A DNA stretch of 64,000 bases, from positions 7,626,001 through 7,690,000 of the forward strand of contig JBHGNT010000004.1 of assembly GCA_043228905.1 (NCBI GenBank), given 5' to 3'. The notes under the pieces are model-generated. The model did no database searches, was not told the DNA's origin, and saw only the letters and a program-made list of their open reading frames with translations. This document shows, in pieces, positions 15,013-59,110 of the stretch (positions are counted from its first letter, which is position 1; every line of letters starts with the position of its first letter). Both the position numbers and the translations under genes were made by a program. This DNA is from Azolla caroliniana. Lineage: Eukaryota; Plantae; Polypodiophyta.

Positions 15013-18000
15013 ATGGATCGTTCCTACAAACTCCGTATCCTTCCTAATTTCTTCCGTTTTGGGTTTTTTTCTTCTCATATTTTGTTTCTATTTATGTGTA
15101 GAATATGATCGTGCCATATCTCTGGCATCAAATTCTTCCTTCTGTTGTCATTTTGCTAAATTGCTTACAAGTCCTGTACACTAAAGAGAATTTGATGCGA
15201 GTGCAAAAGAAAAAAAAAAGAACAAGAGAATTTGATTAGTCATGTATAGATCTTTTAAATTTTTTTCCCCCTTCCTTAACGAAATATTGTGCTAGAGGAA
15301 TTTGTTGCCCATGGTGGCTCGAATGTGACTTGTTTGAAAATAGGTAAGAAGACATCGAGAATGATTGTTACAGGAGGGGAGGATCATAAAGTAAACACGT
15401 GGGCTGTTGCTAGACCTGATCGTGTCATGGTAATTCTATCAATTTTTGGAAAATCTTCGCTGTAATGTGTGTACAATTGTATGAAATTCAAGTATTTTCT
15501 GATTTTTCTTGACATATTATTGTGTAATCCATTCCATGCTTTCAATCTGAAAACCCAAGGTAAAGTTTTATCTTCTCACGGACATTTGCACTCACAAATC
15601 ACGGAGTTTAAAATATGAATTAACGTTAATGAACCCCATGCGTAAAATCGTAAGATCAAGGTAATATTTTTATGTCAAAATTTTCCTCCATGAATCATGC
15701 AATTTCAAATTCAAATAAATATGAACCTATGCCTTAATAACCTTAAACCTAAGGTTAGCTCCTCTGTTTTTAGATGACATATTGTATTCATGAGTCGTGA
15801 AGTTATTGATTTGAATATGGACTCCCCTCATATTTTTCTAATTACTCTATAAGTTGTGTACATGTTATGAACATTTTGTTTATAGTTTTGCCAGTTTGTG
15901 TATATCTTTCAGTTTTTGGTAACCTTTGAAACATTTGAGGGAGGATTTCAAAGCGCAGAATTGGGGTTTGCATAAAGCACTAATTATTATAATTTGCATC
16001 AATTTTCGTACAATATGTAAGCCATATATATTGGTTAATGTTCTTCTCAGAGCTTATCTGGACACTCAAGTACTGTGAATTCGGTTACCTTTGATAATGA
16101 AGAAGCACTGGTTGCTGCTGGATCTGCAAGTGGAGCAATCAAGTTATGGGATTTGGAAGAAGCAAAAAGTAAGCTAGCTAATTATAAACATAGCCCAATG
16201 ACATTTCCAAAATGTAACAGTTTACTTTAATTTTGGCAATCATTGCAGTTGTCAGAACCCTAAGTGGACACCGTTTGAATTGTATTGCGATGGACTTTCA
16301 TCCATTCGGAGAATTTTTCGCATCTGGTTCGCGTGATACCAATCTTAAGATATGGGATATTAGGCGCAAACGCTGCATCCATACTTACAAAGGACATGAT
16401 CGTGGTATTAATGCAGTCAAGTTTAGTCCTGATGGTCGTTGGGTGGTCTCAGGGGGAGAGGACAATGTGGCAAAAGTGTGCACACGCTCTCTCACCTTTT
16501 GTGTCCGCATGTCCATGTCTAATACATATTATGATGCACATTATTTCTTTGCTTTGTACTTGCACCTTGGTAATATCTTTCACCCTTTATGCAATCATGT
16601 GATAATTGCGATCTTGATATCTCTTAGTGCTCCGATTTTTTGCTTTTTAATCTCAGGAAGCTGAGAAATCTTCTCAAATGATCTTTTAAAGATGTCACTT
16701 CTTTCTTTCTTTCTTTCTTCGGTTCATAGGTTTTCAATAAAAGCTACATATTGGCATTTTCGGATAAACATCAAGGATAGTGTTCTATCTTCTTATGTGG
16801 TATGATTTAATTCTTTGTTTGATTTGGAGTGTTTTATAGGTATGGGATTTAACAGCTGGCAAGCTAATGCATGACTTCACGTGTCATCAAGGTCAAATTT
16901 TGTGTGTAGAGTTTCATCCACATGAATTTCTATTGGCTACAGGTGATTTTATAATTTCATCTTGAGTAATAATATATTCTTTTTAACAAGCATATATTGA
17001 AAATATTTTATTGTTATTGTAATTAAAGTATACATTTTCAATATGGACTTTTGTGAATGTGTTATTGAATCCTAGAAAAGTATTTGCATATCATTGGAGA
17101 TTGTTAATCCTAACTAAAGCGACAAGCTGTCAAACCAAAGGCAACGTAAATAACCACGTTCAAGAAATTAGATCACAATGAAGATTAAGTGTTAGAGCCA
17201 AGGATATTAATGTATGCCATATTTGAGCTTTTGAATCCAAATATGGGCTATGGCTGACTAGGAAACAAGTGATGAAAATTTGTGGATTACTATGACTTTC
17301 TAGAATTTTGTGCCCAATCTAGTCATTAGTGGCAACTATCTTGTCATTGCTTCCGTGCTAAGGGTTGGAGTAGGTGTTATAGGCATGACCATAACTTATC
17401 GCAGGATTGTTTTTAGTGTAGTTTTGTACATGCGTGGATGACAAATTTGAGGGTTAAATTGAGAATATAAAGAAAGGAGGATTACTTTTAATCTTGAGGG
17501 TTGGGAGAACCTTCAAGGGCCTAGTGTGAACTGGACATGGGCCTTGGTTCTTGTTTTAAATATGAGACCTAAATAACCTCATACAACAGTCTAAGGCATC
17601 TTGCACCAAAATCATCATGGTTGTAGTTATTTAGCCATGACATATGACACAATCAGGGCGACCAAGGGTAAAAACAAAACTTTTTTATGGAAGGATGGTG
17701 GTAATGTCTTTCCCACCAATATATGGAGATGGATACCACGATCCAAAAACCTTTAAAAAGGACATCATCCGACGTATGTTAGCCATACGATTGTATGTGG
17801 ATGGGTGCATAAGTGTGTGAGTTTTTGTATGAAGTCTTGTTGTAAAAGTATGTGCACATGTGCACAAGAGTGAGTGTGAGTATGTTCGTATGTGTATGAA
17901 CACATGCACACAAATGTGCATGTGTGTAGATATGAAAGAGTGTAAGTAAGTTGTGTGTGTCATGGCTAGAGGGATTTGTCTACGTCGAGTTTGTGATCGT

Positions 18001-21000
18001 GTGGTGAATAGACTCTTGTGTCAAGCACACATGGTGCCGAGTACAACTCAAAGCCCATATGAGGTGGCATGGAATGCCATTTAGATCTTGGGCTTGTCCC
18101 AATTCCTTCGTTGGGGCTGCTTGGGTGGATTTGTATCCTTCTTTCTCAAATTGTTGTGCACATAGGCCCTGGCCCCACGAACCATGACCCTAACACCCGT
18201 GTCATCGATAGATAAAGGCCATTAATCCCTGCCATTGTAGGTGCTTCGCTTGCTTTGGAGGCCTCTCCATTTTTGTTCAACCTATGCTAAAGATCTTTCG
18301 AAGACAAAAGTTGTAATATATCTAACTTGAGAATCTCACATGTGCCAAAAACCAAATTCTTTCGTCTCTTTTTATCTTATTTACTTTTATATTTATTGAG
18401 TAATATTTATTTTATTTTGATTTGTTGTTCTCAAAGATGAGACAACACTTAAGATGTAGTCTCTTGTTTAGTCTTATCGGCCATTTTGGCCTCGTAAAAG
18501 ACGTTAATATATTTTTCTTTCTGTTTGCTCTTTCATTTTTTATCTATTTACTTCTTGGGAGAGGAAAAGGTGGCATACACACACTTCTACACATCCCTAG
18601 GAGTAACATTTATAGGGTCTAGGTTCTCCTTATGGGAGGCTACTTGTGTTAGACTTTCTTGTGGATATGCAACCAATGGTTCGCAAAAGACAATGCGCAC
18701 ATTTGCCTCTCCAAGAGGCATGATCTAAATTGTGGGTATGTCATACACTTCTAACGCCAACTCTTCTCTTGAGAGTAGAAACATGGGGATTGAATCTTAA
18801 CAAGGCAAATAACTTGAAAGATTTAGAGAGACCTTTAGTGTCAACGATTGCCCGCATAATAAGGAGCAAAGCATTGGTGCCCCATGATATAATTGGGGCA
18901 AAGGTTGGAGCGGCCTCTATAATCATCAAGGTATTATTTTGATCGGTGACCTCTATCCAACGACTTTGGGATCTCCCTAAAGGAAAGTAGTCAAGGTTGG
19001 CACTTACGTCATAAAACTTGCTAAACATGGAGATATTCATTGTTGGGGTGCTGAAATGCAACAATGGTTTGAGTGACATGGCATAACATAAATGCACTAC
19101 TGCCATTCCAGTATAGCTTGGACTATCCCCATCTACACATACCAAAGTGGAAAATAATAGAGCGATCCCTATTGTTTTCAAGATGGCCCACTATAAGACA
19201 CTCTTTTTACAAATTTAGAAGGTGGATTTATCATCAAGCCATCTTAATATATTGACATACATTATTGTAGGCATTGGATAGCGTAATAGGTCAACTGTAA
19301 AATCCATCACATCGGTTAGAGATTGAGGTAGGTAGATATGCATGGCTACCTCGAGAACAAAGAATTTACCAATTGTGCCATTAGGGAGTGGAATTTGAGG
19401 AACACTATCTCATTGTAATGTTTTTTATGAAATAAGAGGCGTTAAACAAGGTGTGGCCCACCAAGCAAGGTAATGGAATATGAGGACCAATGTGCTTGAA
19501 ACTTTCCTTGCTAGAACTTAAGAGACATAGGAAAAGTTGAAGAACAACAATATAGCCACACGAGACCATCCACAAAGGCCCACTACATAAGGTAATGGAA
19601 TATGAAAACCAACAATGCTTGGGACCTTTCTTGCTAGAACTCAAAAGACACAAAGAAAAGTTGTTCAAGGACAACAATACAACCATAGAAAATCATCCAC
19701 AAAAAACAATTGCAATTTTCTTTAGCTCCATTGCTCCTACTAATACTACAAGTGAATCAAGGCATGGGTACTTGACCAGGATATAACAAAGGGGTTACAT
19801 ATAGATCGGGTAATAGCAATTTGTCATGCATGTAAGTCCTAGCCCCATGGATCACGATCTCCCCACCCTTGTCATTAGAAAATAAAGGGAATTATCTCCT
19901 GCCATAGCAGGTGCTTCCCTTGCTTCAGAGACATCTCCATTTTGGGTCGACTTATGCTAGAGATATTTTGAAGACAAAAATTACAATATATCTTACTTGA
20001 GAATCTTACTTTGATGATAACAAGATTCTTTAAATCTCTTTTTATCTTATTTACTTTGTGTTACTTGGTGACATTTATTTATTCGATTTGTTGTTCTCAA
20101 AACTGAGCCAATTACAGTTAAGTTGTAATCTCTTGTTTGGTCTTATAGGGCATTTTGGCCTCTTAAAGTCACAATAATATTTCTTTCTTTCTTTCATACT
20201 TGCATTAGAGGAATCCTTAATAGTGGTAGCTACCCTAATTCTCGCAAGGTGAGTGAGGACTGTTGTATTATTGCTTTGGGAAATAAGAAAGTCTTTCGTG
20301 CCTCTCTGTGCGGAAGATCAAGAAGCATTCGATTGTTGTTGAGTACCTGCGTATGACAGTTTCTATGTCGTTGCACAGAGAGAGAGAGAGAGAGACAGAG
20401 ACAGAGAGGCACGAAAGACTTTCTTATTTCCCAAAGCAATAATACAACAACCAGATACTGCTTCAAATTCGGCAATGGAGCAATTTCGTGGAAGTCGAAA
20501 CTTCAGGAGTGCACAGCGACCTCAACGACCGAAGCAGAATATGTAGCTGCGTCCGACGCAGCAAAAGAAGCTTTGTGGCTCGGTCGGCTGGCGCACACGT
20601 TTCGACAAGGCAACAGCACCTTGACTGTCGCTGTAGACAACTGGAGCCGAGTCATGGTCGACTTGTCGAAACGTGTGCGCCAGCCGACTGAGCCACAAAG
20701 CTTCTTTTGCTGCGTCGGACGCAGCTACATATTCTGCTTCGGTCGTTGAGGTCGCTGTGCACTCCTGAAGTTTCGACTTCCACGAAATTGCTCCATTGCC
20801 GAATTTGAAGCAGTATTCGGTTGTTGATTTCCGACTGTCTATACAACCGGCGAAGTCCGAGTCGGTGTAACCGACTACGCCTGAGGTTCGGTTCGGACCG
20901 AAAAGAATGCCATGGTCTTTTGTGCCAGCCAGATATCTGAACACATGCTTGACTGCGTTCCAATGCGATCGGCCAGGATTGTGCATAAATCTGCTAACGA

Positions 21001-24000
21001 CTCCTACGGCGTGAGAAATATCAGGCCGTGTCGCGACCATCAGGTACATAAGGGAGCCGACTGCCGGTGCATACGGTACCGACTTCATATCTTCCCCCTC
21101 TGGGCCGGATGTCGGGCAGTCTCGCTGAGAGAGCCGAAGATTCATTGGGAGCGGGGTTGAGGCAGATTTGGCTGATTGCATGTTGAAGCGTTCCAAGACA
21201 CGTCCGATATAGTCGGTCTGAGACAAAAAAAGATGTCGTTTGTCGCGATGCCGACTAATCTTCATGCCGAGTATGTGTCGTGCCGGACCGAGGTCCTTCA
21301 TGGCAAACTTCAACCGCAGTTGCCGAATGAGATCGGCAAGTTCGCCCGCGTGGCGTCCAGAAATTAGCATGTCGTCCACGTAAATGATGAGGAAGATGGG
21401 TGATCCATCTTGAGCTGTGTTGGTGAAGAGACAATGGTCCTCATCGCTTTTTGAGAAGCCGATCGATTGGATGAAGTCGTCGAACTTCTTGTACCATTGT
21501 CGTGGTGCCTGTTTGAGGCCGTATAGACTCTTCCTGAGTCGGCAGACTAGATGTTCTTGGCCAGTAGCAACGAAGCCTTTTGGCTGCTCCATATAAATTT
21601 CCTCTTCAAGATCACCATGGAGGAATGCTGTTTTGACATCTAGCTGAATCAGCTCCAGGTTGTCGGCTGCCACTACGCCGAGTAGAAAACGAAGGGTTGT
21701 CATTTTCACCACTGGTGAAAAAATCTCGTCGAAGTCGACGCCATATTCTTGTCGGAAGCCCTTCGCAACTAATCTGGCCTTGTACTTTGGGGTGGTCGAA
21801 TCAGACGTCTCTTTTAGTCGATAAACCCACTTGCAAGGAAGAGCACGTCGGTTCCTAGGTAATTCGACCAGATCCCAAGTCTTGTTTGCCCGAATGGAGT
21901 GCATTTCCGACTCCATCGCCAGATGCCAGGTGGCTGAATCGACAGATGTCGATGCTTCTTCGTAAGACGTCGGTTCGCCGGCGTCGGTGAAGAAAACTCC
22001 AGGAGAGTACCTCTCCGGAGGTTGCGACAGTCTCTCGGATCGTCGAGGTAAGATTGGACTGGTCGCATCGGGTATCAAGGTCGGATGGTCCGAAAGCGGA
22101 TTGTTCTGCTGTGCCGAGTCGGAGTTGTCCGAGTCGGTGGTGTAAGGTTCAGCTACCCGTGAAGCTGACCGTGTGTTGAGAGCAGGGCCTTCTTGAAGGG
22201 TCGGCACATCGGAAAACGTTACCCTTCGGACTTCGATCGATTTTTCGACTGATGGATTCATAGCCGACTCGTTGAACACAACGTCCGAACTTCGAACGAT
22301 TTGCCTGCGTTCGGGGTCCCAGAGTCGGTATCCCATTTCGCCGTCGGATCCATATCCAAGGAAAATGCATTTCCTGGACCGCGGTGCAAGTTTTCGGCGA
22401 TCATCTTTCGGAATAAGGGCGTACGCCTCGCATCCGAAGATCCTCAGCTTGTCGTAATTCGGCTTGCTGCCGATCCATAGTTCCTGAGGAATTTGAAGTC
22501 CTAGAGGTCTACTTGGCGACATATTGATTATGTGTACTGCCGTGAGTAGAGCCTCTGCCCAGAAGCCATCCGACAGTCCGGAGTGTTGGAGCATGGAAAC
22601 TATCCGTTCTTGGATTGTCCGATTCATGCGTTCGGCAATCCCGTTTTGCTCCGGACTGTGTGGTGCCGTAAATTCACGTCGGATGCCGCGTTGTCGGCAG
22701 AATTTGACGAATTCTTCGGATTTGAACTCTCCCCCATTGTCTGTCCGAAAGCATTTCAGCTTTCGGTCGGTTTGATTTTCTACCATAGCGAGCCAATCGG
22801 TGAAGATCGAGAAGACCCGATCTTTGGTGCGAATTGGATAAGCCCACACCTTTCGAGTCGAATCGTCAATAAAAGTGACGAAGTAAGAGGCACCGCCGAG
22901 AGACTGATGCGGCATTGGGCCACAGACGTCCGAGTGGACCAGATCGAGAGGTCTCGTTTCTCTTGGTGCTGATGTCGGGTGTGATGCGGCTACTTGTTTG
23001 CCATACTGGCAATGCTCGCAGAATTGATGGTCGGAGAAGGAGAGTTTGGGGATGTATCCGGCTCTAGATAGGTGCGTGATGCCGGCCTTGCTTAGGTGTC
23101 CTAATCTTCGGTGCCATAGTGATGACACAGGAATATCCACCAAAAACAGGTTACCCTCTCTGAGCGTAACATGTAACGGATACAGGGAGTGTATCTTGGG
23201 TCCTCTAGCAAGCAGGAGGTTCCCCCTGTGGAGTGTCCACCCTCCCGAAGAAAAACCGGCACGAATGCCGTCTTCATCTAGTTGTCCGACTGAGATCAAT
23301 GGCCTTGAGAGCTCGGGTACATGTCGGACATTGTGGAGTACAAGTGTAGAGCCACCTGCAAGGTTGAGCTCTACTGTGCCGATTCCGATGATGTCACAGT
23401 GTTGTGAGTTGCCGACTCGAACTGAGTCGGAGTGACGGATCGTATATTGCCGAAATTGGGATCGATGAGGAGTCACGTGAAATGATGCGCCCGAATCTAA
23501 GAGCCATGTGCTCGATTCTTCAGTTGTGAGTAGAACTTCTGATCCGACTGGATTTTCGATTGATAGTATATTCGGGTCGTCTGGTAGCACATCAGCTGAG
23601 GAGCTGACGTAATTGATCTCCTCATGCCGGCCACTCTTCTTGTAGTTCTTGTTCTTGAGTGCGCGGCAGTCGGCTTTGATGTGTCCGGGTTTCTTGCAAT
23701 AGTTGCAGATTCGGTTATCCCGTGACTGGCTCCGTCTTCGCTGATTGTTCGGCGGCCGTGAGGAATCTCTTCCTCGTATGTTCGATCGGTCTGTCGAACC
23801 TTGTACTACGTAAGCGTCGTCTGTTGAGTCTTTGGCGAAAGACTTTCTCCGAGCTGCTTCGGTCAGGATTGCGCTCGTGACTTCGGAGTATTTAACAGCC
23901 GTGGTTGACGCGTTGCACACGGTTGTGACGAAAGTTTCCCATGATGAGGGAAGGCTGCTCATGAGTATCATTGCTCTGAGTTCATCCTCAATTGCCGTCC

Positions 24001-25192
24001 CCTGTGACGAGATTTGGGAGCTTATGCTTTCGTACTCATTGAGGTGTGCTTGAACCGAATCGGATTCTTTCATCCGCAAGTTGTAGAGGCGCCGGATCAG
24101 AAACATCTTCGTTGCGGCGACCTTCTTTTCGTAAGTGTCCGACAGTGTTTTCCACAGTTCGAATGCTGTCGTACACGATTGCACCGTAAAGTATACCGAT
24201 TCCGATAGGTGCATCCGAATCGTGGCGCGGACAATTCTGTCCAGCTTCTGCCACTCAATCGGTTTGTATCCTTCTGGAGGTTCTTCATTTTCGATGGGAT
24301 CGATTTGCCCCTTGACTATGAGATAGTCCTGCATTTGCTCCTTCCAGAAGTTGAAGTTCGATCCATCGAACTTTCGTAGACTCATTTCTGACGAGCCGGA
24401 TGTTGATGCCATCAAATTTGGTGTCGGTTAACGAAGCTCGGTTCGGAGTTGACTACGAACCTTGTTGGAGTGCAGCCGGTTGGCTCACCCGATATCGTTC
24501 TAGTCGGATTTGAACCTGAGTCGGTTCGGCTTCGAATATATGTATTGTTGAACTTGCTCGAATTGACTCCGGTAACTTGAGGGACAGAACCGACTGGTCT
24601 TCCCGAATGGTTCCGAGTCGAAGTGAGCCCGGTTCGCTTCGGATATATATGCCGAATACCGATTATTGAAACCGATTATCTGGACCGATTCTGCTTCGGG
24701 TGGCTGCAGCGACGAGAGAGACAGATCCAACTGATCCTCTCGAATGTCGATCAGCCGGATGAAGCACGAATTGGGGTTGTTGTCTTGAGACCGATCTGCA
24801 CCGAGTGGTTACAACGAGCGGCGAGCAGCGTTTGTTGACTACTTCGGATGCCGTTTAACCGAATGGAGCACGATCGTGTCAATGATACACAAGGGGATTT
24901 CACCTCGAGCGGTTACGATCACAAGGAACAGAGTACAACCTGATGGCTTACTCCAAGCAAGAGGATCTAACGCGATGAGGTGCAAAACCTCGTTTTTTTT
25001 TTTTTGTTCTTCTTCTCTCTTTTTCGAATGACGCAGGAAACCGAATGCTGAGACGACGGCCGACAGCGGATTGAAGGACCGACTACTGTGCAGGCTCTGA
25101 TACCAGATGTTGTAGAGAAAGTCGTCTGTGCGGAAGATCAAGAAGCATTCGATTGCTGTTGAGTACCTGCGTATGACAGTTTCTATGTCGTT

Positions 25193-25230
<38 letters not shown>

Positions 25231-27296
25231 GCACGAAAGACTTTCTTATTTCCCAAAGCAATAATACAACAACCAACCTTACAAAAAGGTTACAAGGTCA
25301 CTATATATAGTGACCGACTTAGGGCAACTACCCTTTATGCTAATTACATAAATGGCCAAAACGGGATAGTGTGAATACGTCCATTATACACATGTATTCG
25401 ACAAGGACCATTGTCAAATGTCTTGGAGGTTGTCAATAAAGTGAGTAGTTTTCTTTGGAGAACTTCTACATCATATCTTAAAATATAGTAATATATCTTT
25501 CTTCTTCTTCCAATGCTCTTAATGATAATAAAGCAAAGGAAGTTACTTAAGGCAAGCAAGCAAGCAAACTATTGAATAAATACTTAACTAAGAATGGGCC
25601 CCAGACATTGCAAAGGGGTTACATGAGATTGGACGATAGCAATTTGTCTTGCATGTAAGCCCCCCGTGCTCACGATAAAGAAAATCGGATAGGCTTCAGG
25701 AAGGCCAAAAAAGCGGCACGAAATAACATCGGGATTCCGAAAGTATACACTTAAGATAGATCTAGAACAAGACCCGAATCCCACCATAAGTGGCAAACCC
25801 CATGCCTTCATGAACCATGATCTGACCACGCTTGTCATCGATAGTTAAAAGGCCATTATCTCTTTCCATCGCAGATGCTTCCTCACTTCGAAGATCTCGT
25901 CATTCTGGATGGACTCATCTGAAGACAAAAATTAGAAACTATCTAATTTGAGAATCTTGAACGTAAAGATAACAGAAATCTTTAGCCATTTTTTTATTAT
26001 TGAAAGTTTTAATTAGTTAAATTTGTTTAGCCATTTTTATTTTTATTTAAACTTTCAATTAGTTACATTTGTTTAGCCATTTATTTTATTTTTATTGATT
26101 TAGTTATTTTTAGTTTTTGGAAAAAAAGTTACATTTGTTTGGTTTGTTGGTTTAATATAGGGAAAAGTACCAGGATACCCCTGGAAGTTTGTCTATTTAC
26201 CAGAATACCCCTGAAAGTTCTAAATTTACCAAACTACCCCTATATCCAAAAAAATACATTCTATAAAGTAAATATACACTCAAATGTACAAGCCATATTT
26301 ACCAAACTACCCTTAAACCTAGACTTTTTTACCATAGGGCTAGTTTGGTAAATTTGGCTCATAAATCATATCCCCCTCAAACCCTCCACATCCCCATCAT
26401 ATCCCCCTCGAACCATATCCATCGTCCTCATCATCATCTTCACCATACTCATCTTCCTCTTCGACATCTGCCTCATCACCACCACCACCACCATCATCAT
26501 TAGGAATTTCCTCCCCCAATTTACCATCTCTTCACACGACAGCAGCTCTCTGCTAACCTAGACATCTCCATCGACCTTTTCGAAGCTTCGTATCCATGGC
26601 GGTGCAGGATATTATTGCATCGGAGAAGAAGAAAATTGTGGTAAGGATAGCCAAAAAACATCGTGGCCACCACATCGTCTTTCTGAGGGAAGCTTTAACC
26701 CTAGCTCTAATTCCTTTGATCATCACCACGAGCACGAAGATACGGCCATCAAATGGGGTATCCCTTAGACCCTACGCATCAGAACCATCATGCCGCAGTA
26801 AAGGGGAAGCAACATGGTGATCTATCCAAAGTATCGACTTTGGATTACCTTTCTGATTCGGACCTGTCTTCCACTCGGATAAACTCTATCGGTGGGGTGG
26901 ATCCTGATTTTACTCGGATTAAGGCTTCGACCAATGATCAAATCAAGTTAATGTGTAGCTTCGGTGGAAAGATCATGTCTCGGCCAATGGATGGGAAGCT
27001 CCCATATGTAGGAGGAGATACTCACATTTTGAATGTCATTAGCAAAGCCTCCTATTCTTCTCATCATGATCCACAATTCTATATGGCTGCAGAATCTCCC
27101 AAAAATACTCTAGGAAACAAAAATAGCTTGTAAATAGAAATATGTAGTCATGGACCAAAAATAATTTAATCCAAGGGATAAGATTTAAGAGTACTTAGAT
27201 TCTTATGTTGATCTAGCTATACATAGCTTCTCACCACAGACAATTGGTTATGAACCTCGCCTGAGAAGATCTAAAAATGACTACATATAAACACAA

Positions 27297-27359
<63 letters not shown>

Positions 27360-30300
27360 TGACCTTATGAAGACGATTGATGATGAACAAGAAAGGAGAG
27401 AAAACTACCCAAATAATCACTAAGTAAAGAATTTTCTGTTTGAAGGGTAGTTTGGTAAATATGGCTTGTACATTTGAGTGTATATTTACTTTATAGAGTG
27501 TATTTTTTTAGACATAGGGGTAGTTTGGTAAATTTAGAACTTTCAGGGGCATTCTGGTAAATAGACAAACTTCCAGGGGTATCCTGGTACTTTTCCCTTT
27601 AATATACCTCTCTTTCTTAGTTTACTAAGCATTTTAATTTTCTCAAGTTATTCCTTGAGCAGTATATTATGAATTAGTTTACACTATCAAAGATTCTAGT
27701 CTAGAAAAATGTTTATGTTTCCTATCGATCAATTAAGCTAAAATAGAGAAAGTTTAGAAACTGTGTGCAAGCTTAAATTTTACATGTTAATGCACAAAAG
27801 AAAAACAAATCGAATATGCAGGATCCGCTGATAAAACCGTGAAGTTTTGGGATCTCGAGACCTTTGAGTTGATTGGATCTGCTGGACCAGAGGTGTGTTC
27901 AAAATTCAAATTGATCTGTAGCCAAGGTTTTTGCATATTGTGTCATTTAAATGCAGGAAAACTCTGAAATACTGCCGTTTTTATTTCCCCAAGTATCTTA
28001 CATCCTCATTATTTTCCCAAATAATGGGATGCTGCTGAAAAACCAGGCCATGTTTCACAATCATATAAGTGTGTGATTTACCTATTTCTAAGCAGATGAC
28101 TGGTGTGCATTCTTTGGTATTCAACTCTGATGGACGGACATTGTTGGCGGGTTTACAAGAACACATGAAGGTGAGTTTTTAAGCTATATTATGATGGTTA
28201 ACTGTTTTTTTCAGCATTCTTTTGCTAAACTGGATAGAATCAATCAGGTCTTCTCATGGGAGCCTTTGAGATGCCATGATGTTGTAGATGTTGGTTGGTC
28301 GAAAATAGCAGACCTTACTATCCAGGAAGGGAAGCTACTTGGTTGCTCGTATAATAAGAGTAGTGTAGGCATCTGGGTGGTCGATTTATCAGTAAGTGTT
28401 AGCCATGTAAATATTTCTGTAGACTTGGACTGGTAACTCAAATGGGCCTTTTTATATTACAGCGCATAGACCCCTATGCTTTTGGCAGCCATGGTCCTTT
28501 CAAAGGCATACCAATTATCGAACAATCTTCTCAACAAATGATGAATGGGAGATTAAAGAGTAGCAATTTAGCACGAAATATCTCACCTTGTGATGTAGAG
28601 TCACCTGTGGGAGACATCAAGCTAAATACTACAAAGAAATGTATGTCTAAGAATTATGGCACCTGCTACACTATGCATAGCATTAGTTGCTATGTATGTC
28701 TTATAAGTGTTAATTTCTTTTTCAGTAGGAAACAGTCGCTTTTTAATGTATGCACCTATAGCTATAATGTATGTATGTATGTGTACGTGTATGTATTTAT
28801 GTATGCATGCATGTTTGAATGTATTAGTCTATTCATATTTCCGTTTGTATGTATGTATGTATACATGTATGGATGTTTGTATTAAATACGTATGCATGTG
28901 TATTTGGATGTCTGTGACTGCAAGGCACATTGGTAATTGTGGAAAAGGCTCCATTGAGCACTATTATTTAATCAACCAGAAGCCTTGACAATTACACCTG
29001 ATGTTGAACCGAGGAATAATATCTTGCATCAGAATGTATTTTCCTCATTCACATGTTTTGGATACTGGAACATCTAGACCTATACATACACGTCTTTGTT
29101 ATGCAAACTTTTCAACTTAGATGAAGAAGCTCCTATTTGGTTCTTCTACTTTGTCCAACAGTCCTATGACATGTTTACTAGCATTTTCTTTTGTAGTACT
29201 GGCACTTCATAATGAACATCTTCAATTTACTATTTCTGTGACTGTGAAATCTGACGTGTTTTTATTCGTAATGCCAATTCACATTCCTGATCTAAAAATG
29301 AGGCACAACTCCTCAAATGTTGATAGTGAATTTCTAAGCCATGTTGTTGGAGCTTTTATGATTCCATTGAACCTTATAAGACGGACATTTTGCAAACTCC
29401 TCACGTGTCTGTAAGATATAATTATCTAAACTTGGAGGTTATTTATTCCTGTATACATTTTCCAATCTTTAACCTCTTTACCCAGCCTCCAGTTTTTGGA
29501 GCTTGTATTTTGCGTCTCAAACTAATGTTTGATGATGCTCCAGGGCTTCAAAGTGTTTGTTGTATGTCAAATTAATTTTGCATGAATCATTTTACTCGAT
29601 AGATAGCACATAAAGCATTGGAATTTTGCCGTTCCATTGTCCTTCCTGTCTGTTATAAAGTTGTTACTTCAGATATGCTAGTATAGTCCATTATCATGTT
29701 AGTTTCGGAGAACTTTCAATATGCCATTATGAAAGCTTATACTACTTGGTAGTGAACCAAATACCCTTTGGACAATTTTTACGTGAATTTGGTTTACTAC
29801 CAATCATGTAGCTTGGTTCAAAGAGAAATCATAGAAGATTGGGTGTTAATTTGTGCAGAACTGCATACAATTATGCAGGCAAGACTATCCTTAGATGCCT
29901 TCATGTTGGGAACTTTTACTAGTATGAACAGTGATTTTTGAGAGAGAAAAGATCAGTTTTCTTTGATGTGGCTTTCAACCATTGACAAGTTTGTGCTTTT
30001 ATTTTCATTACAAAGCAGATAATGCTGCAGTCAGGGATGAAGATCAATATGTGAAAGCAATAGAAACTTCATGCATCGGTAAATGTTCTCTTTCCTGTGT
30101 CTCTAAACATGTTCACATTAGGTCTATAAGTCATTCTTGGGGATCTCAAATGCAGGTGGTGTAGAGATCAGGCAGGGACATTATGTAGCAAATGTAAACA
30201 ATAAGGACTCCATCGCAGAAAGAGGTATGGTGAGCATGCGAGAGCATGGATTGAGAGCATCTGGTGTTGATGCACATTCCTTTATTTTGGTATGTGACCT

Positions 30301-33300
30301 CTAGTTAATCTTTGACACCAAGTGAAACATTAGCCTTAAGGATTCCCGTGAGGAAGTTGTTTAATCATTTAAGGAATGATATATTACTTATAACTTCCCG
30401 TTTATAATTGAGACCGAGTAGGAACACTTTTAGGTGTAGATAAAACTAACTAACAGTCTGCAACTGGCAGTTCTTTGGCTGATTAAATGAAAGTTGTTTC
30501 AGCATGTACCTAAGAATTGTTATTGCTTTATAATTCCATTTGGCTGTGTGGTTCATGCTAAGATACAGAACTTCTTATGCTTCCTGAATCAGAGAAGGAA
30601 TCAGGGATCAATGGAGAAGGCTTCATCATTAACAATCGATGATGCCAAGATTATAGACAAGTTGATGGAGGATCACAACTCATTTACGAGTTCCATGCAG
30701 TCAAGATTGACAAACTTGCAGGTGAATACAGTGCATTCATATCCATGAATTGAGTTTCTAGTTTTCTCATCACTCTAGTAAGATCATACTGTATATAACC
30801 CATAACTGAGGGGAATACTGCAATTGTCTAGCTGTATATAACCCGTAACTGATTGTCTAATAGATAAATTGCATATATCCCATAACTGACTCCTGTAAAA
30901 TCTTATATAACCCATAACTAAGGGTTATATTTGTTAGATATAATTAATGATCAGCCCCAAGTTGTAAATCTATCCCCATATTTGCTCTTAGAGTGCACAT
31001 TTTGTGATAGCGCCCATAACTGACTCCTGTAAAATCTTATATCCCATAACTGACTCCTGTAAAATCTTATATAACCCATAACTAAGGGTTATATTTGTTA
31101 GATATAATTAATGATCAGCCCCAAGTTGTAAATCTATCCCCATATTTGCTCTTAGAGTGCACATTTTGTGATAGCGCCCCAAATGAGGAGCGGCTAGTGT
31201 GCAACTCGATCATATGGGTCGATAAGGTGTTTAATCTAGGAAACCGTAGATGCGTAGGACACAATGTATTTAGGAAAGAGAGAAATAGGTAATAGGATTG
31301 GCTAATCAAGTCAAATAGAATATTTTGTGGGCAAGTTATGATGTACTTAGTCTTGAAGTATGCGTCATTGACTTCAAGATAAGTACTATCTAGCACTAGC
31401 CTGTACCTAGGGCGTTGGTCATATTAAATGACAAGTCAGTTGACAGAAAAGGAATATCTTCACTACTATTAACTGACTTGCACATTTAATGTTATACTTA
31501 GACCAAACATAGAAAGCAATCCACTTTCTTTTCACAGTGGTCGGCTTGATTATCAGTCCCCACTAATTTTGTAGTGAGCTGGTCCATATCCTATCTAAGC
31601 TCTAAGGTGTGAGTGCATGGGAAAACTACCATTGTGAGCTACTCTCATATGTAATCGAAGTTTTGTTTTCATATATCCCATCTCTGTAGTTGTAACTCTA
31701 TATACTTATCCAATTGATTCTCAATATTTCTAACAATATTAACATCTATAATTGATGAAGTGTCCACCTCTACGAATTAATGACAAGCTTTGACCTAAAG
31801 TGAGTTATCAACTTGTTCAATCCCCGTGCAATCATCTGGTAAATGGGTAGATTTTATCCCAAATAAAGGTCCTTAAAAATAGGGCTCATCACTAGGGTAG
31901 AGAGACAAGTAGTTGTTTTTTAACATCCAGAGGAGACCAATGCACAATTTGTAGGATAGGGCGGCCCATGATGAGGATCAAAGTTGGGTTCCCTCTCTCT
32001 GTCTCTCGCGATAGAGCAAGTAGAGGAATGTTGATGATAATGTGGACCATGACTATTAGGATACAAGGCACATGGGTCATAACATCATTGCTCTCCATTT
32101 TAGTTCTGTTTCAGGAAACCGAGATGCTCTTGTTGAAGTTCATCATAGCCTTGTTCCATGTGCACCAACTAACCAACCTTAGATATGCTGTAGAATCACA
32201 AGTACTCACCATACATGAAGTTATGCACTTCTTCTTGAAACCCTTTCCAAAATTATTTTACAACATGTATTAAGATCATGATGATGGAACTTAGCAAACG
32301 TAGAGCTTTTATTTTTGTTTTAATATGGATGACATGAACTCACCAATATTTGTTCCACTGCACCAACCAACCAACACTACGTAACCTATGCACTTCATTC
32401 TTAAAACCCGTTTGCACGTAGTAAATCATTGGGTCCCAATACATAGTGAGGGAGAGAACATTGACAATTACTTAAATGATTTGTATAGACCTGAAGGACA
32501 TTAGGAATCTAACCTTTATGGTCTGCACCTTTTGTTTTGTTGTCGTGCTCTTTAGACATTGCTCTTTTGTATGACCCTTCTTTTTGCAGAATACGCAAAT
32601 GTTGTCGCTTACAATCGCGATCCATGAATTCGTTGGGTGTCTTGCGTTTCCCAGCGAACTGCGACTGCTTAGTCCCGGGCGCTTCGTTGGGTTTGTTGTG
32701 GTCCTTCAAAGTGCGTTGATAGCGAAGAACTATTTTAACGGCCTCTTCGAAGGATTTCGGATCCTTATCGTGCACTATCCAGTGAAAGTCCGAATTGGGG
32801 ATGCCATTGACAAAACAAGCTATTAACCAATTGTCCCCTTCTAGACCCAATTTTTGGATTTGGGTTCTAGCATGGTGGACATAGTCTTCTAGCGAGGAAA
32901 ACTTCCTGCTAGAGAGGTTCATTAAAGCTTGTGCTGCCTCGGTTCGAGAGGGAGGTTGCAGAAATTGGCCCTTGAAAACTGTGACAAAATCTGTCCAAGT
33001 ATCGGGCAATTTCCCCAAAGTTCAGAGCCCACGCCACCAGGCCCCCCTAGTTCTCGGTTGACATATGCAATCTTTGTACTATTTTCGTCCCATCGGCCCA
33101 GCCACATGCAGATTGCTTCTTCGTTTCTTTCCTTTTTTTCTCCCGTAAATGGGTTTACGACAAATGATGGTTCACCTTGACGCTCATCGGGTCTATTAGT
33201 GTCACGTTGTAAACTAATGACACATGCCTCGAGAGTACTTTGAGATTGCCGAAGTTCAGACATCTAATGAGTGGTTGAACTAAGGAAATTTTGTATTTAT

Positions 33301-39084: not shown

Positions 39085-42000
39085 CAGAACATAAACTCAA
39101 TTCAAAAATATCACTAAAACTCTGTACATGCAACGTGCTAAACAACACTATTTATACAAGTCCATAAAGGACTGATAGAAGTATTGACACGTACTTCAAT
39201 ATTCCTACGTGTGACTAACACTAACTACGAGACAATGATTACCTAGTAGTCTAGGCTACTACTAGGCTTCCGGTTCCTGCTCGAATCCAGCTCTCCGATC
39301 CGTCTCCTTGATCCGGCCGGTTGTTTCCGAATACCATCCGGATACCGATCCGGCTCATCCTTCCGGATGCCGATCCGGCTCAGGCTTATTCAGCTGATCC
39401 GGATCCGGTTGAGCTTGCTCGATCAACAGACATTAATATATCTAGTGTTTCCAAGTGTTTGTATATCGTTCCCAACCACCGATGCTAGGAAATGCTAGAG
39501 GCTCCGGAGGAATGGCTGTATTGTACAGAAAGGAGATGCATGATAGAATGCATGTCGTGCATAATGATGCAGATGCACACTATATGTGGATAAGAATCAG
39601 AAGAGGGAACCTTAGGGAGCTATATATTGCAAAGGCGTCACAATAGATCAACTCCTACTCATGCTACAAGTCAATAGTGGCTACAAAATAGGCTCCCAAC
39701 TATGACATTGCAAAGGGGAAACACCATTACCTCTGTAAGCAAGGCGTTGGCCCATTACCCAAGGTAATGGAATATTAGACAATGGCTTTTCTCACTCAAA
39801 CTCTAGAGATGCAAGAAGTTTCTCGCTGGCATAATAGGTAGTGGCTTGTTGCTCTCAAAGATGAGACAACAATTCAGATGTAATCTCTTGTTTGGTCTTA
39901 TAGGCCATTTTGGCCTATCAAAAGATTTAGAGAGAGCTTTAGTGCCAATGATTGCCCACATGATAAGGAGCAATGCATCGGTGCCCCATGATATAATCCA
40001 GCCAGAGATGGGAGTAGCGCCTATAATCATCGAGGCATTATTTTTCTCAATGACCTCTATCCCAGGACTTTGGGAGCTCCCTAAAGGAAGGTACTCAAGG
40101 TTGGCACTTATGTAATGAAGGCAACTTGCTGAACATGGAGCCATTCATTGTTGGTATGCTAAAATGCAACAATGGTTTGAGTCACATGGCATAAGCAAAA
40201 ATGAGTAGTAACCCCATTCCAATATAGCTTGGACCGTCCCCATTGAAACTTAACTAAATTAGAAAATAATAGAGTGATCCCAATTAATATTATTAACTTG
40301 GAAAGCAAGATAATATGGATCAGCCCCCAAATATCAGTTGGTAGGAAGATGGCCCACAATAAGACTCAGTTTTTACACACATCGGATGATGGATTCATCG
40401 TCAGGCCATCTTATATGGATATACATCTATGCTATGCGCTGCGTAGTGTGATAGCGCATCTATGAACTTCATCACACCAATTAGAGATTGAGGTAGGCAG
40501 ATATGCATCATTAGGGAATGGAATCCCAAGGACACTATGTTTGTCATTGTAGTGCCTTTTATGAAATAAGGAGACACCATTGCCTCTTTGAACAGGGCTT
40601 CACACACTATGCAAGGTAATGGAATATGATTACCAATAGTGCTGGAAACTTTTTTTGCTAGAACTCAAGAGACACAAGGAAAATTTGTTAAAGGACAACA
40701 ATACAAGCACACAAGATTATCCACAAAGAACAATAACAACTTTCTTTAGCCCCATCACGCCTGCTAATGCTACAAGTCAATTAAGGGCCACACAAATGGG
40801 CTCCCGACCAGAACATAACAAAGGGATTACAATAGATCGGGCAATAGCATTTTGTTGTGCATGTAGGCCCTGGCCCATGGGACTGCGATCTCACTACTCT
40901 TGTCATCGATAAATGAAGGCCGTTATCCCCCACCGTCGCATGTGCTTCCCTTGCTTCGGAGACGTCTCCATTGTGGATCAACCTATGCTAAAGACCTTTT
41001 GAAGACCAAAATTACAACGTATCTGACTTGAGAGTCTTACATCTGCCGATATAAGATTCTTTAGTCTATTTTTAACTTAGGTGCCTTTTTTTTTTTACTT
41101 AGCAGCATTTATTTATTTTGATTTTTTGTTCTCAAAGACAAGACAACACTTGAGATGTAATCTCTTGCTTGGACTCATAGGCCATTTTGACCTCTTAAGA
41201 ATGTTAATGAATCTTTCTTTCTTTCTCTGTTTGGTTGTTTACTATCATAAAATTAAAATGAGATATAATGAGGAATTGCATCTTACGATATCACCTCATC
41301 TTTGAAACGACCCAGCCAAAATAAATATGAGTAAATTTGTGAACCGGTTTAGTGCTTAGCTAAGCATGACATTCTGCACCTACTAGATGAACTGAAACTT
41401 CTACCTTTGAAAGATCTCTAACATGAGCTGATCCAAGATGGAAAGTTCTCTGAAGCAGAGGAAGTACCATTAGTTTTGGTTGATAATGGTCTTGATTTGT
41501 ATATGTTAATGATAATGGGTTCATGGTTTAGATGAACCTCTTATGAATGGTTTTGTCAAGTCCCTACTTTTGTACCCCTTGGTTGACTTATAGAAGAGAA
41601 TACTTCTTAGAATTCTATTATGTTGTGTAGTGGACCAAAACTTGTACCTCTGACTGGCACATTCAAAATTATGAGCATTAGCAGATCCATTCTTCCATAT
41701 ATTTGCATGCATATCTGTGTCTCTCTCTTATTAACTGATGTTAAGAGGTCTTGAGCTTCACTATCATTCTATGGAGGCACGAGAGATGTGTATCCATATA
41801 AGAGGGAATCCATCTTGTGACAAGATGAAAAGAGGGCCTTATAGTTCATCTTCCTACTATGAGGCATTGTGTGGCTGATCCATATTCTTAAATCAGCCAA
41901 TTTTATGATATCAGTTCAGGTTACCCTATTCTTTCATACTATGATAATGTTCAAGTGTGAATAATCCAGGGTAAATTGGAATTGATTGTAATACATTTGT

Positions 42001-54666: not shown

Positions 54667-57600
54667 TGTTGGGGACAAGGTCGTCAGTGTAGAAGACCAA
54701 ACAACATCTGTGATGTTGAAGGACCTGTGTATGAGAATGAACAAGATACACACACACACACACACACAGGCACAAAGAAATGTTTTATTTCTTAATAGCA
54801 ACAGTTACAAATGACAACCAACCTCCACTAAAGGTTACAAAGTCACTTTATATAGTGACTGTCCTAGGGCAACTGCCCTTTATGCTATTTACAGAAATAG
54901 CCCAAACTTGGGTTGTCCAAAGGGACAGTGTGAATACGGCCATTATACACTCGTATTCGACACTCCCCCGTAATGGGTGTATACATGGGTTATCTGAAAT
55001 TACAGGTATATACAAGGTTTATCAGACAGATCGATTTTGTTCAAGACCGAACCGGTCGAGTCGAAAGAGTTGAAGCCGATCCTTAAAGAACCGATGTCGG
55101 TTGTCCGTAACCATCCTGTGCTGTGTGTCTGACTTTAACCGGACCGATTTTTCGTTACGCCCATCTGGTGCCAAAGGGACCGGAAGCGATCCGCCAAAAG
55201 ACACTTGGTCATTCCATCTACGACATTATCGGTTGTGGATATCTTCTCAAGACCGATTTTCCCTGAAATGACGCAGTCCCGAACAAAGTGATATCAAAGC
55301 AACAACACCCTAACTGTCGTTGTAGACAACTAGAGCTGAGTTGAAGTCGACTTGTCGAAACGTGTGCGCCAGCCGACCGAGCCATAAAGCTTCTTTTGCC
55401 ACGTCGGACACAGCTACATATTCCGCTTCGGTTGTTGAGGTGGTTGTGCACTCCTGAAGTTTCGACTTCCACGAGATTGCTCCATTGCCGAATTTGAAAC
55501 AATATCCGGTTGTTGATTTCCGACTGTCCACGCAGTCGGCGAAGTCCGAGTCAGTGTAACCAACTACGCTGAGGTTGAGTTCGGGCCAAATACAATGTCG
55601 TGGTCTTTTGTGCCAGCTAGATATCTGAACACATGCTTGACTGCGTTCCAGTGCGATCGTCCTGGGTAGTGCATGAATCTGCTGACGACTCCTATGGTGT
55701 GAGAGATATCAAGCCGTGTCGCAACCATCGCGTACATAAGGGAGCTGACTGCCGATGCATATGGTACCGACTTCATATCTTCCCCCTCCGGACCGGATGT
55801 CGGGCAGTCTCACTGAGATAGCCGAAGGTTAATGGGGAGCGGGGTTGAAGCAGACTTGGTCGAGTGCATGTTGAAGCGTTCCAAGACACGTCCGATGTAG
55901 TCGGTTTGAGACAAGAAAAGTTGTCATTTATTGCAATGCCGACTAATCTTCATACCAAGTATGTGTCTTGCCGGACTGAGGTCCTTTTATGGCAAACTTC
56001 AACCACTGTTTCCGAATGAGTTCGGTGAGCTCTCTGGCATGTCGGCCGGAGAGTAGCATGTTGTCCACGTAAATGATGAGGAAGACGGGAGACCCATCTT
56101 GAGTTGTTTTGGTGAAGAGACAGTGGTCCTCATCGCTCTTGGAGAAGCCAGTCGACTGGATGAAGTCGTCGAACTTCTTGTACCACTGTCGAGTTGCCTG
56201 TTTCAGGCCGTATAAACTCTTCCTAAGTCGGTAGACTAGATGCTCCTGGCCGGATGCCACAAATCCTTTCGGCTGCTCCATATAGATTTCCTCCTGTAGG
56301 TCACCGTGGAGGAATGTCGTTTTTACATCTAGCTGAATCAGCTCCAAGTTTTTGGCGGCCACGACACCAAGCATGAAACGAAGGGTTGTCATTTTCATCA
56401 CTGGTGAAAAGATTTCGTCGAAGTTGACGCCATATTCTTGTCGAAATCCCTTCGTAACTAATCTGTCCTTGTACTTTGGGTTGGTCGAGTCGGACGTCTC
56501 TTTTAGTCGATAGACCCATTTACACGGAAGAGCACGTCGATTCTTCGGTAATTCGACCAAGTCCCAAGTCTTGTTTGCGCGAATGGAGTGCATTTCCGAC
56601 TCCATCGCCAGATGCCAGGTGGCTGAGTCAGTAGATGCCGATGCTTCTTCGTAAGACGTCAGTTCACCGGCATCGGTAAAGAAAATTCTGGGAGAGTACC
56701 TTTCCGAAGGTTGCGACAGTCGCTCGAATCTTCGAGGTATGACTGGATTGGTCGCACCGGGTATAGGTGTCGGATGGTCGAAAGCCGAGCCATTCGGCTA
56801 TGCTGAATCTATGGATTCAGGACAGGAGGTGTCGGTTACCCATGAAACCGATCTTGTGTTGTGGGCTAGGCCTTCATGAAGGGTTGGCACTTCGGAAAAT
56901 ATTACCCTTCGGACTTCAATAGGCCTTTCGGCCGTTTTATGCATAGCCGACTCGTTGAACACAACGTCCGAACTTCGGGCGATTTGTCTGTGCTCGGGGT
57001 CCTAGAGTTGGTATCCGATCTCGCCGTCGGATCCATATCCAAGGAAAACGCATTTCCTTGATCTTGGTTCGAGTTTCCGGCAGTCGTCTTTCGGTATGAG
57101 CGCATATGCCTCACAGCCGAAGATCCTCAGCTTGTCATATTTCGGCTTACTGCCAGTCCATGTTTCCTGAGGTATTTTAAGTCCTAGAGGTCTACTTGGC
57201 GACATATTTATTATGTGTACTGCCGTAAGTAGAGCCTCTACCCAGAAGCCATCCGACAGTTCGGAGTGTTGGAGCATGGATACTATGCGTTCTTGAATCG
57301 TCTGATTCATGCGTTCAACGATTCCGTTCGGCTTCGGACTATAGGGTGCCATATATTTACGTTGAATGCCGCGTTCCCGGCAAAATTTGATGAATTCATC
57401 AGACTTGAATTCTCCTCCATTATCGGTTCGGAGACATTTTAGTTTTCGACCATTGCATGCCATTCGGAGAAGATCAAGAACACCCGATCTTTGGTTCTAA
57501 TGGGGTAAGCCCACACCTTCCAAGTCGAGTCGTCAATAAAATTGATGAAGTACGAAGCATTGCCAAGAGACTGATGTGGCATCGGGCCACAGACGTCCAA

Positions 57601-59110
57601 GTGGACCAAATTGAGGGGACTCAATTCTCTTGGTGGTGATGTCGGGTGTGATGCGGCTACCTATTTGCCATACTAGCAATGCTCGCAGAATTGGTGATCT
57701 GAGAAGGAGAGCTTGGGGATGTAACCGGCTCTGGATAGGTGCATTATGTTGGCCTTGCTGAGGTGTCCAAATCGTCCGTGCCATAACGATGACACGGGGA
57801 TATCAACCAAAAATAAGTCACCCTCTTTGAGTTTGACATATAAAGGGTACAAAGAGTGTACCTTTGGTCCTCGAGCAAGTAGGAGGTTCCCTTTGTGGAG
57901 TGTCCACCCTCCTAATGAGAACCCGGCACGGATGCCGGCTTCGTCAAGTTGTCTGATTGAGATCAAGGGTCTTGAAAGCTCAAGAACGTGTCGGATGTTG
58001 TGTAGTACGAGTGTAGAGCCACCCGGAAGGTTGAGCTCTACGGTGCCGATTCCGATTATGGCACAGTGTTGCCAATTCCCGACTCAAACTGAGTCAGAGT
58101 GCCGGTTCGAGTATTGCCAAAACTGAGATCGATGAGGTGTCACATGATACGATGCGCCCGAGTCCAGGAGCCATGTGCTCGATTCCTCAGTCGTAAGCAG
58201 AACTTCTGATTCGACTGGGTTCTCTATGGATAGTATGTTCGGGTCAGTCGTCAAAATTTCGGCTGAAGAGCCGGCATAGTTTACCTCCTCATGTCGGCAA
58301 CTCTTCTGATCTACTCTCTGAGCTTTATCGGTTTTTGCTTTGAGTGCCTGACAGTCGGCTTTGATGTGTCCTGGTTTCTTACAGTAGTTGCAGATTCGGT
58401 TGTCTCGGGACTTGCTCCGGCTTCGTTGATTGTTCGGCAGTCGGGAAGAACTTCTTCCCCGGTTGTTCAATCAGTCGATCGAACCTTGTACTACGTAAGC
58501 TTCATCTGCCAAGTCTTTAGAGAAAGACTTTCTCCGAGTTGCTTCAGTCAAGATTGTGCTCGTGATTTCGGAGTACTTAATGGCAGTTGTTGAAGCGTTG
58601 CACATGGTTGTGACGAAAGTTTCCCAAGAAGAGGGGAGACTACTCATGAGTATCATTGCTTTGAGTTCATCCTCTATTGTCGTCCCCTGAGATGATATTT
58701 GGGAGCTTAGGCTTTTGTACTCGTAGAGGTGTGCCTAAACCGAATCAGATTCTTTCATCCGCAAGTTGTAGAGGCGCCGGATCAGATACATCTTCGTTGC
58801 AGCGACCTTCTTTTCATAAGTTTCTGATAGTTTTTTCCAAAGTTCAAAAGTTGTCGAGCATGATTGCACTGTGAAGTACACTGACTCCGACAAGTGCATC
58901 CGAATCATGGCACGGACGATTCTATCCAGCTTTAGCCACTCGTTTGCCTTGTATGCTTTTGGAGGATTTTCATTTTCAATCGGGTCTATCTGACCCTTGA
59001 CTATGAGATAGTCTTGCATTTGTTCCTTCCAGAAATTGAAGTTCGAACCGTCGAACGTCCTTAGACTCATCTCCGATGAGCCGAATGTTGATGCCATCTC
59101 GGAGGAGACA
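54667..59110 (-). mobile_element. Degenerate Ty1/copia (family C, second copy); 3' LTR 54667-54962, 5' LTR missing
   Basis: 296-bp LTR homologous to 25108-25403, PPT (CTCCCCC on +) at 54963; gag-pol collinear with 20522-24415 but with stops and frameshifts. Confidence 0.92.

Follow-up and report, generated by a model that had tools for sequence, protein, structure and literature searches.

How does a retrotransposon come to carry two hairpins side by side in place of its 3' end, and what may follow when such a structure lies in the intron of a host gene? In this work we have addressed these questions for a Ty1/copia element in a 64,000-nt stretch of the genome of Azolla caroliniana (assembly GCA_043228905.1, contig JBHGNT010000004.1, positions 7,626,001 to 7,690,000 of the forward strand), which we call the window and whose own numbering is used throughout. 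The element occupies 20261–25403 of the minus strand, between two AGGAC duplications, and is antisense to the plus-strand gene of the katanin p80 type (KTN80) whose intron it has entered. The double fold-back structure at its 3' end is a real rearrangement, and the explanation that we favour, with a probability of about 0.68, is that a single nascent sense strand, which in one pass snapped back onto itself twice, accounts for the whole of the rebuilt end.

The rebuilt end consists of two inverted repeats (Table 1). The first, which is made of long terminal repeat (LTR) sequence, has 49-nt arms that are 100% complementary; the first 7 nt of its outer arm coincide with the true terminus of the U5 (unique 5') region, TGTTGTA, and the last 5 nt with the TCTGT of U5. 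The second, made of RNase H coding sequence, has arms of 165 nt with three differences between them, and the repeat finder extends it to 170 nt at 97%. Both repeats had been described in an initial annotation of this DNA, and their positions were borne out by our analysis. Comparison with the intact 5' LTR and with an older related Copia copy in the same window tells us what is missing, namely the C-terminus of RNase H (about 65–70 codons), the 3' untranslated region, the polypurine tract and, within the 3' LTR, the first 128 bp as well as 10 bp near the U5 end. The annotation had reported the loss of the RNase H tail, the 3' untranslated region, the polypurine tract and the U3 (unique 3') region, and all of these are indeed absent; the LTR, however, was not lost entirely, as 20305–20453 is a direct copy of it. 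This remnant lies downstream of the TATA box and hence probably represents the R (repeat) and U5 regions. A double hairpin is the predicted fold of both strands of the rebuilt end, with −457 kcal/mol (z = −34) for one and −437 kcal/mol (z = −47) for the other. Each of the three differences between the 165-nt arms is a C>T change in a CG or CHG context, and derived states, judged against the older copy, are present in both arms, although the difference at 20453 could alternatively be derived from the LTR at the junction. On the plus strand these positions pair as A·C, G·U and G·U, and on the minus strand as G·U, A·C and A·C.

Table 1. Positions of the features of the Copia element, its host intron and the older related copy within the window.
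Feature	Position	Strand	Remarks
Intron of the katanin p80-like host gene	16943–27821	+	GT..AG, 10,879 bp; splits a WD40 repeat between the flanking exons
Target-site duplication AGGAC, left copy	20256–20260		
LTR hairpin, outer arm	20261–20309	+	49 nt; inverted copy of LTR 25223–25271 (presumed R start)
3' LTR remnant	20305–20453	−	Collinear with 5' LTR 25125–25275; one substitution and a microsatellite length change
LTR hairpin, loop	20310–20400		Contains the GA/CT microsatellite
LTR hairpin, inner arm	20401–20449		Within the 3' LTR remnant
Pol hairpin, inverted copy of RNase H coding segment 20662–20826	20445–20609	+	Sense pol on the plus strand of the window
Gag-protease-integrase-reverse transcriptase-RNase H open reading frame	20606–24412	−	1269 open codons from the ATG at 24412
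Pol hairpin, loop	20610–20661	−	Native pol; collinear with the older copy from 20606 upward
Pol hairpin, native RNase H arm	20662–20826	−	
Primer-binding site TGGTATCAGAGC	25094–25105	−	Initiator tRNA-Met type, 2 nt past the LTR; read directly
5' LTR, intact	25108–25403	−	296 bp, TG..CA; TATA box at 25301–25310
Target-site duplication AGGAC, right copy	25404–25408		
Older related Copia copy	54667–59098	−	82–89% identical (overall ~84%), many stops; reference for the missing 3' region

The origin of this structure can be read from its four junctions, all of which show microhomology: TGTTGTA (20261–20267), TCTGT (20305–20309), CAACAACC (20445–20452) and CAAG (20606–20609), with lengths of 7, 5, 8 and at least 4 nt, respectively. 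At random junctions in the same sequence, homology of at least 8 nt has a probability of 1.4e-4, of at least 7 nt 4.9e-4, of at least 5 nt 5.4e-3 and of at least 4 nt 1.7e-2; each of the four is far beyond chance. The initial annotation had named these motifs as switch points and had proposed serial template switching mediated by microhomology. All of the motifs are present, and the four homologies lend support to this proposal. At the pol breakpoint the homology may be longer than it now appears. Relatives of the element carry ALSK(N) at this point (...ALSKN...), and if the parent had the canonical ALSK codons of these relatives, CAAG could be extended to TCGACAAG. Such a parent probably had CTTGTCGA(AA) at the pol junction. 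This sequence could pair with TTTCGACAAG, which lies 52 nt upstream, so that the pol fold-back may plausibly have started from a native CTTGTCGA/TCGACAAG seed of 8–10 bp. We can only infer this seed, because the older copy has a deletion of its own at the same spot.

For the LTR hairpin a native repeat can be seen directly. The U5 end of the intact 5' LTR (25108–25129 on the plus strand) reads TGTTGTA-G-AGAAAGTC-G-TCTGT, and the presumed start of R reads, on the sense strand, TGTTGTA-(18 nt)-AGAAAGTC-(11 nt)-TCTGT. Three blocks of the U5 end (7 + 8 + 5 nt) thus recur, in order, in the 49-nt R segment, which means that the intact LTR already has an interrupted inverted repeat, 25223–25271 against 25108–25129. 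When strong-stop-like DNA and R-U5 RNA are folded in silico, the R start pairs with the U5 end, as it also does, via different bases, in the predicted R-U5 fold of the older copy. It therefore appears that the 49-bp hairpin is this imperfect native repeat made perfect, the long arm having been copied over the short one, a point that the earlier description did not contain. An imperfect repeat that has been perfected is the trace that quasi-palindrome correction, a form of template switching, classically leaves. Other marks of snap-back synthesis are found as well: a nearby inverted template, microhomology at both junctions and accompanying deletions (10 bp and ~460–520 bp). The templates of the two inverted segments lie at distances of 52 and 91 nt and were copied on the same strand and with the same polarity, and a pre-existing imperfect inverted repeat is seen for the LTR hairpin and deduced only from the ALSK codons for the pol hairpin.

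We hypothesize that the growing sense strand reached CTTG in the RNase H region, where it would have folded onto a short complementary stretch of its own, 52 nt upstream, and used itself as template for the next 165 nt. It would then have re-annealed to its proper template at GGTTGTTG/CAACAACC, close to the R start and ~460–520 nt onward, thereby skipping the RNase H tail, the 3' untranslated region, the polypurine tract and U3. Proceeding through R-U5 to ACAGA, the strand would have folded back a second time, on the TCTGT in R, copied 44 nt of itself and rejoined the template at the terminal TACAACA; this second fold-back would have done no more than perfect the native interrupted repeat between the R start and the U5 end, as in quasi-palindrome correction. 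Which polymerase could have done this? It may have been reverse transcriptase finishing the plus strand before integration, with the heteroduplex resolved after integration, or perhaps a host polymerase at work in replication or in the repair of a break shortly after the insertion. Both snap-back synthesis and, at breaks, insertions templated by a fold-back have been documented (PMC11724301, PMC5728401). Quasi-palindrome correction of the Ripley type, the snap-back form of synthesis-dependent microhomology-mediated end joining and fold-back templated insertions (PMC5728401, PMC2943611, PMC11724301) resemble our case in the inverted copy taken from adjacent sequence, in the microhomology at entry and exit, in the deletion that goes with each event and in the perfecting of an imperfect inverted repeat. 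They differ in that two events lie side by side in the Copia copy and in that the polymerase here may be reverse transcriptase.

Some observations do not sit easily with two snap-backs of one sense strand. In the known systems the copied segment is mostly 5–34 bp, the typical range for fold-backs in break repair, and the 165-nt segment found here is far longer (PMC11724301). If the accident took place in plus-strand reverse transcription, the heteroduplex would have had to be resolved toward the rearranged strand. The predicted R/U5 pairing in the young copy is energetically unexceptional (z = −0.2). Lastly, the breakpoints in the LTR, with the inverted arm ending at 25271 and the remnant starting at 25274/5, sit ~30–35 nt downstream of the TATA box, close to where transcription should begin. 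This position weighs on the same side because it is meaningful only if minus-strand strong-stop DNA gave rise to the rearrangement.

Such a minus-strand accident at reverse transcription is a serious rival, which we nevertheless regard as unlikely. U5-R strong-stop DNA would run off the 5' end of the RNA, miss the normal R-to-R transfer and invade, at CAACAACC/GGTTGTTG, a second, extended minus-strand complementary DNA (cDNA) in the same particle, of which 165 nt would be copied. It would return to the RNA at CAAG, and plus-strand strong-stop DNA of the sister cDNA would supply the complete 5' LTR. Apart from the position of the breakpoints, it speaks for this course of events that the LTR remnant comprises R-U5 only, that the divergence between the arms is no lower than that between the LTRs and that self-priming of strong-stop DNA, with dead-end products, is known in vitro (PMC6088434). 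However, the intact U3 of the 5' LTR can be accounted for in this model only with two cDNAs and an intermolecular rescue, the start of transcription is a predicted one, and the closeness of the two breakpoints to each other is partly due to the motif TACAACAACC, which holds both microhomologies. Moreover, on the minus strand, a 37-nt patch within its first 25 nt requires an extra switch onto another strong-stop DNA. The self-priming minus-strand strong-stop DNA of retroviruses (PMC6088434) is similar in that R-region DNA folds back during reverse transcription and yields dead-end hairpins. It was described for HIV-1 in vitro and its integration is not expected, whereas the Copia copy was integrated, with target-site duplications. 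The stem in the Copia copy, in contrast to the self-primed product, is R sequence with a 91-nt R/U5 loop and is located at the 3' LTR, a geometry that better suits a nascent plus strand, as in the two snap-backs that we propose.

When did the rearrangement occur? The LTR pieces differ by one substitution in ~125 bases outside the microsatellite and the arms by 2–3 in 165; these divergences are not significantly different (Fisher p = 0.64 to 1.0, on tiny numbers), and a rough likelihood ratio of ~1.75 favours a fold-back as old as the insertion. From these tiny numbers the fold-back would appear to be about as old as the insertion. That it has since aged in the genome is suggested by the three C>T changes, by the derived states in both arms and by the single substitution between the LTR pieces. 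It had been proposed that identical junctions elsewhere would date the event to reverse transcription. This is not diagnostic, as an accident of reverse transcription would be equally unique: without a polypurine tract, and with U3 absent from its RNA, the rearranged copy cannot hand a full LTR to its progeny, so identical junctions are not to be expected under either timing.

The remainder of the element is that of a Ty1/copia retrotransposon in which the order of domains (gag, protease, integrase, reverse transcriptase, RNase H) is preserved. Its open reading frame has Pfam matches to Retrotran_gag_2 (39–190), Pol_BBD (303–382), rve (486–587) and RVT_2 (843–1088), and the RNase H motifs DSD, TEAEY and SDSQ are visible in the translation. 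The termini are also those of the group, with TG..CA, a primer-binding site and a 5-bp target-site duplication, both copies of which are intact, as the initial annotation had stated; the 3' LTR is partial and retains its 3' terminus TGTTGTA. The reading frame is cut off after GAVALSK, ~65–70 residues before the usual end of its relatives and with the loss of the KHID motif region, and past the ALSK breakpoint it runs through 27 junk codons into the inverted arm, to a stop at 20522–20524. The polypurine tract, a complete 3' LTR with U3 and a complete RNase H, which replication needs, are all absent between 20453 and 20606. It seems that this Copia copy was recently inserted and is now dead, unable to replicate. 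In a search for further copies that might reveal the intact 3' end or share the junctions, the nearest protein in a large protein collection (protein word search) was only 53% identical, and an exact 25-mer from the LTR had no match among metagenome contigs, in DNA collections that hold no plant genomes. We also noted a (GA/CT)n microsatellite of ~35 nt, at 25194–25230 and 20374–20408, whose length differs between the LTR pieces and which falls in the loop of the LTR hairpin. Mirror-repeat tracts of this type can stall polymerases, and perhaps the microsatellite favoured the switch.

The older copy has its polypurine tract and LTR start near 54963. As the initial annotation had assumed, it serves as a reference for the missing region; it is an imperfect one, however, because of its ~84% identity, its stops and its own deletion in the RNase H tail. 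At 55280–55300 its GVVAL is directly joined to YHFVRD with a frame shift, so that through a small deletion it is without the same RNase H KHID region, near the breakpoint of the young copy. Homology between the two copies ends at the gag ATG (59098), and beyond it, at 59100–60400 on the plus strand, lies a decayed Copia-like protease/integrase coding sequence from another element, from which we conclude that the older copy is either truncated at its 5' end or nested there. It is the sole relative in the window, and the young family of which the annotation spoke finds no support beyond the single young copy.

The identity of the host gene, for which the exons were compared individually, one at a time, follows from its conserved domains. 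WD40 matches in Pfam are found in stop-free stretches of the plus strand at 15.3–16.9 kb and 27.8–28.4 kb, and two collinear fragments of Katanin_con80, likewise in stop-free stretches of the plus strand, at 42.1–42.4 kb. The upstream exon ends at 16942 with GT next to it, and the downstream exon starts at 27822 and is preceded by AG. These data support a gene of the katanin p80 type that is apparently intact, with its WD40 and con80 exons open and with plus as the sense strand, and both hairpins are inside its GT..AG intron; the earlier assignment of the gene to KTN80, and of the hairpins to the sense strand of this intron, is therefore upheld. An independent empty site was not obtained from the window, in which the paralogous repeats end 65 bp short of the insertion point. 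The Copia element is nested within a dispersed repeat (18131–20192, 39846–41226 and 25809–26029) that has three to four copies in the window, with 68–84% identity, two of them in the host intron and one in the downstream 11-kb intron of the same gene. The intron that holds the element contains a second inverted repeat, 26149–26355 / 27402–27608, with 207-nt arms that are 88% complementary and 1046 nt apart. It resembles a DNA transposon's terminal inverted repeats and would likewise give a hairpin in the host pre-mRNA; an open reading frame of 126–137 aa between its arms has no Pfam match. Further downstream, just past the candidate KTN80 exon 30491–30745, there is a direct repeat of 142 bp (30874–31015 / 31038–31179, 100% identical, 164-bp spacing) that looks like a very recent tandem duplication.

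Could the host gene, then, turn the hairpins into a silencer? Long near-perfect double-stranded RNA is normally cut by the Dicer-like enzymes of plants. Judged by the sequence and its predicted folding, such RNA would be present in the host pre-mRNA, which includes both hairpins, and in an LTR-driven transcript, which includes the pol hairpin. The production of small interfering RNAs (siRNAs) from the hairpins is thus plausible. The hairpins had been called host-driven, and they do lie in the host intron in sense orientation; this source is not exclusive, though, as the intact 5' LTR promoter would transcribe both pol arms. Such a transcript might end before the outer LTR arm, at a variant poly(A) signal, AATAAG, in R.

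It is a further step to suppose that the KTN80 pre-mRNA constitutively yields siRNAs from both hairpins and that these silence the Copia family in trans, in the manner of Mu killer, and we consider this quite improbable. The plus-strand stems are near perfect, with one true mismatch, and both lie in the sense transcript of a gene that is apparently intact; Mu killer itself is transcribed by read-through from a flanking gene (PMC3440606). However, the pol hairpin would also be made by the element's own promoter, and there is no sign of selection, the C>T changes at CG/CHG sites being those of any methylated repeat. In the window, where no close family member was found, the 21-mers of the hairpins match the element itself and only three short runs (23–34 nt) of the older copy, the sole relative, which is 84% identical and decayed and shares few of them; the distance to the nearest database protein points the same way. 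The initial annotation had stressed that two of the three arm differences become G·U pairs on the plus strand, leaving one mismatch. The count is right, but it carries no evidential weight, because each transition in a stem gives G·U on one strand and A·C on the other, and at least two of three transitions giving G·U has a probability of 0.5. We have accordingly rejected it as evidence of plus-strand function. Sub-threshold generic hairpin matches in Rfam, to MIR2646 (52.6 bits against a cut-off of 245 bits) and isrG, were set aside as meaningless. A selected silencing role is unlikely, and any siRNA output is likely to be a by-product rather than a selected function.

Three known systems help to place the locus. 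Mu killer of maize, in which MuDR has undergone a natural inverted duplication (Slotkin et al. 2003, 2005; PMC3440606), likewise combines inverted terminal and coding sequence of a transposon with a neighbouring host promoter positioned to read through both arms, and a long hairpin RNA is expected from it. An inverted duplication able to form such an RNA is present here too, as the repeats and predicted folds indicate. Mu killer, however, derives from a DNA transposon, its hairpin is ~4 kb long, and both siRNAs and heritable silencing in trans have been proven for it, whereas the Copia copy is an LTR retrotransposon with intronic stems of 49 and 165 bp and a putative source of siRNAs. For the Arabidopsis Copia element EVD, inverted LTRs were proposed to give rise to the LTR siRNAs by which transcriptional silencing is started; a search for LTR hairpins as this trigger, which stayed unproven, found only one antisense nested insertion, itself untested (PMC11624286). 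The inverted LTRs of EVD come from that nested insertion and are ~2 kb apart, whereas those described here arose by template switching within one element. The LTR palindromes of maize Sireviruses (PMC4728375) are also hairpin-forming sequences in a Copia LTR and are tied to siRNA targeting. They are short, native and family-wide, in contrast to the weak native inverted repeat that was expanded here in a single copy.

Two further explanations were considered. It is very unlikely that the structure is an artefact of sequencing or assembly, such as a mis-join or a chimeric read that folds back. Library preparation is known to produce inverted chimeras with microhomology, but the 165-nt arms differ by three substitutions, with derived states relative to the older copy in both of them, the structure is internal and bounded by matching target-site duplications and correct element termini, and it comprises two separate fold-backs of the same polarity, each of which returns to the template in order. 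Least credible of all is a second copy of the same family inserted antisense in the 3' end and later reduced by deletions to its R and RNase H pieces: antisense insertion of a Copia element into itself does occur (PMC11624286), but neither a second target-site duplication nor a second terminus was found, the pieces, which run as inverted R, direct U5-R, inverted pol and direct pol, are ordered and interleaved in a way that demands at least three deletions, each ending in microhomology, and both inverted pieces copy sequence less than 100 nt away.

It is an open question how plants first recognize an LTR retrotransposon that has newly become active. A favoured, poorly documented trigger is the hairpin formed by a rearranged copy, which was shown for Mu killer and sought unsuccessfully for EVD (PMC11624286). 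There is a slim chance that the locus described here is a natural 'killer' of an LTR retrotransposon, in which one replication accident produced a double hairpin against the element's own LTR and pol, expressed constitutively from an intron of a housekeeping-type gene, and silenced the family. If true, this would supply the trigger, an LTR hairpin, that was sought without success in the work on EVD. Taken as a whole, the locus holds a real, dead and rearranged Copia copy of a known kind, plausibly a source of hairpin RNA, and is not evidence of a new system. It is, all the same, a clean and datable case of the origin of hairpins within a single element, with all four junctions readable, and it is placed where a host gene would transcribe the hairpins, which makes it a good test locus if small-RNA data exist. 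It also indicates that the native R/U5 pairing of an LTR can seed a much longer palindrome.

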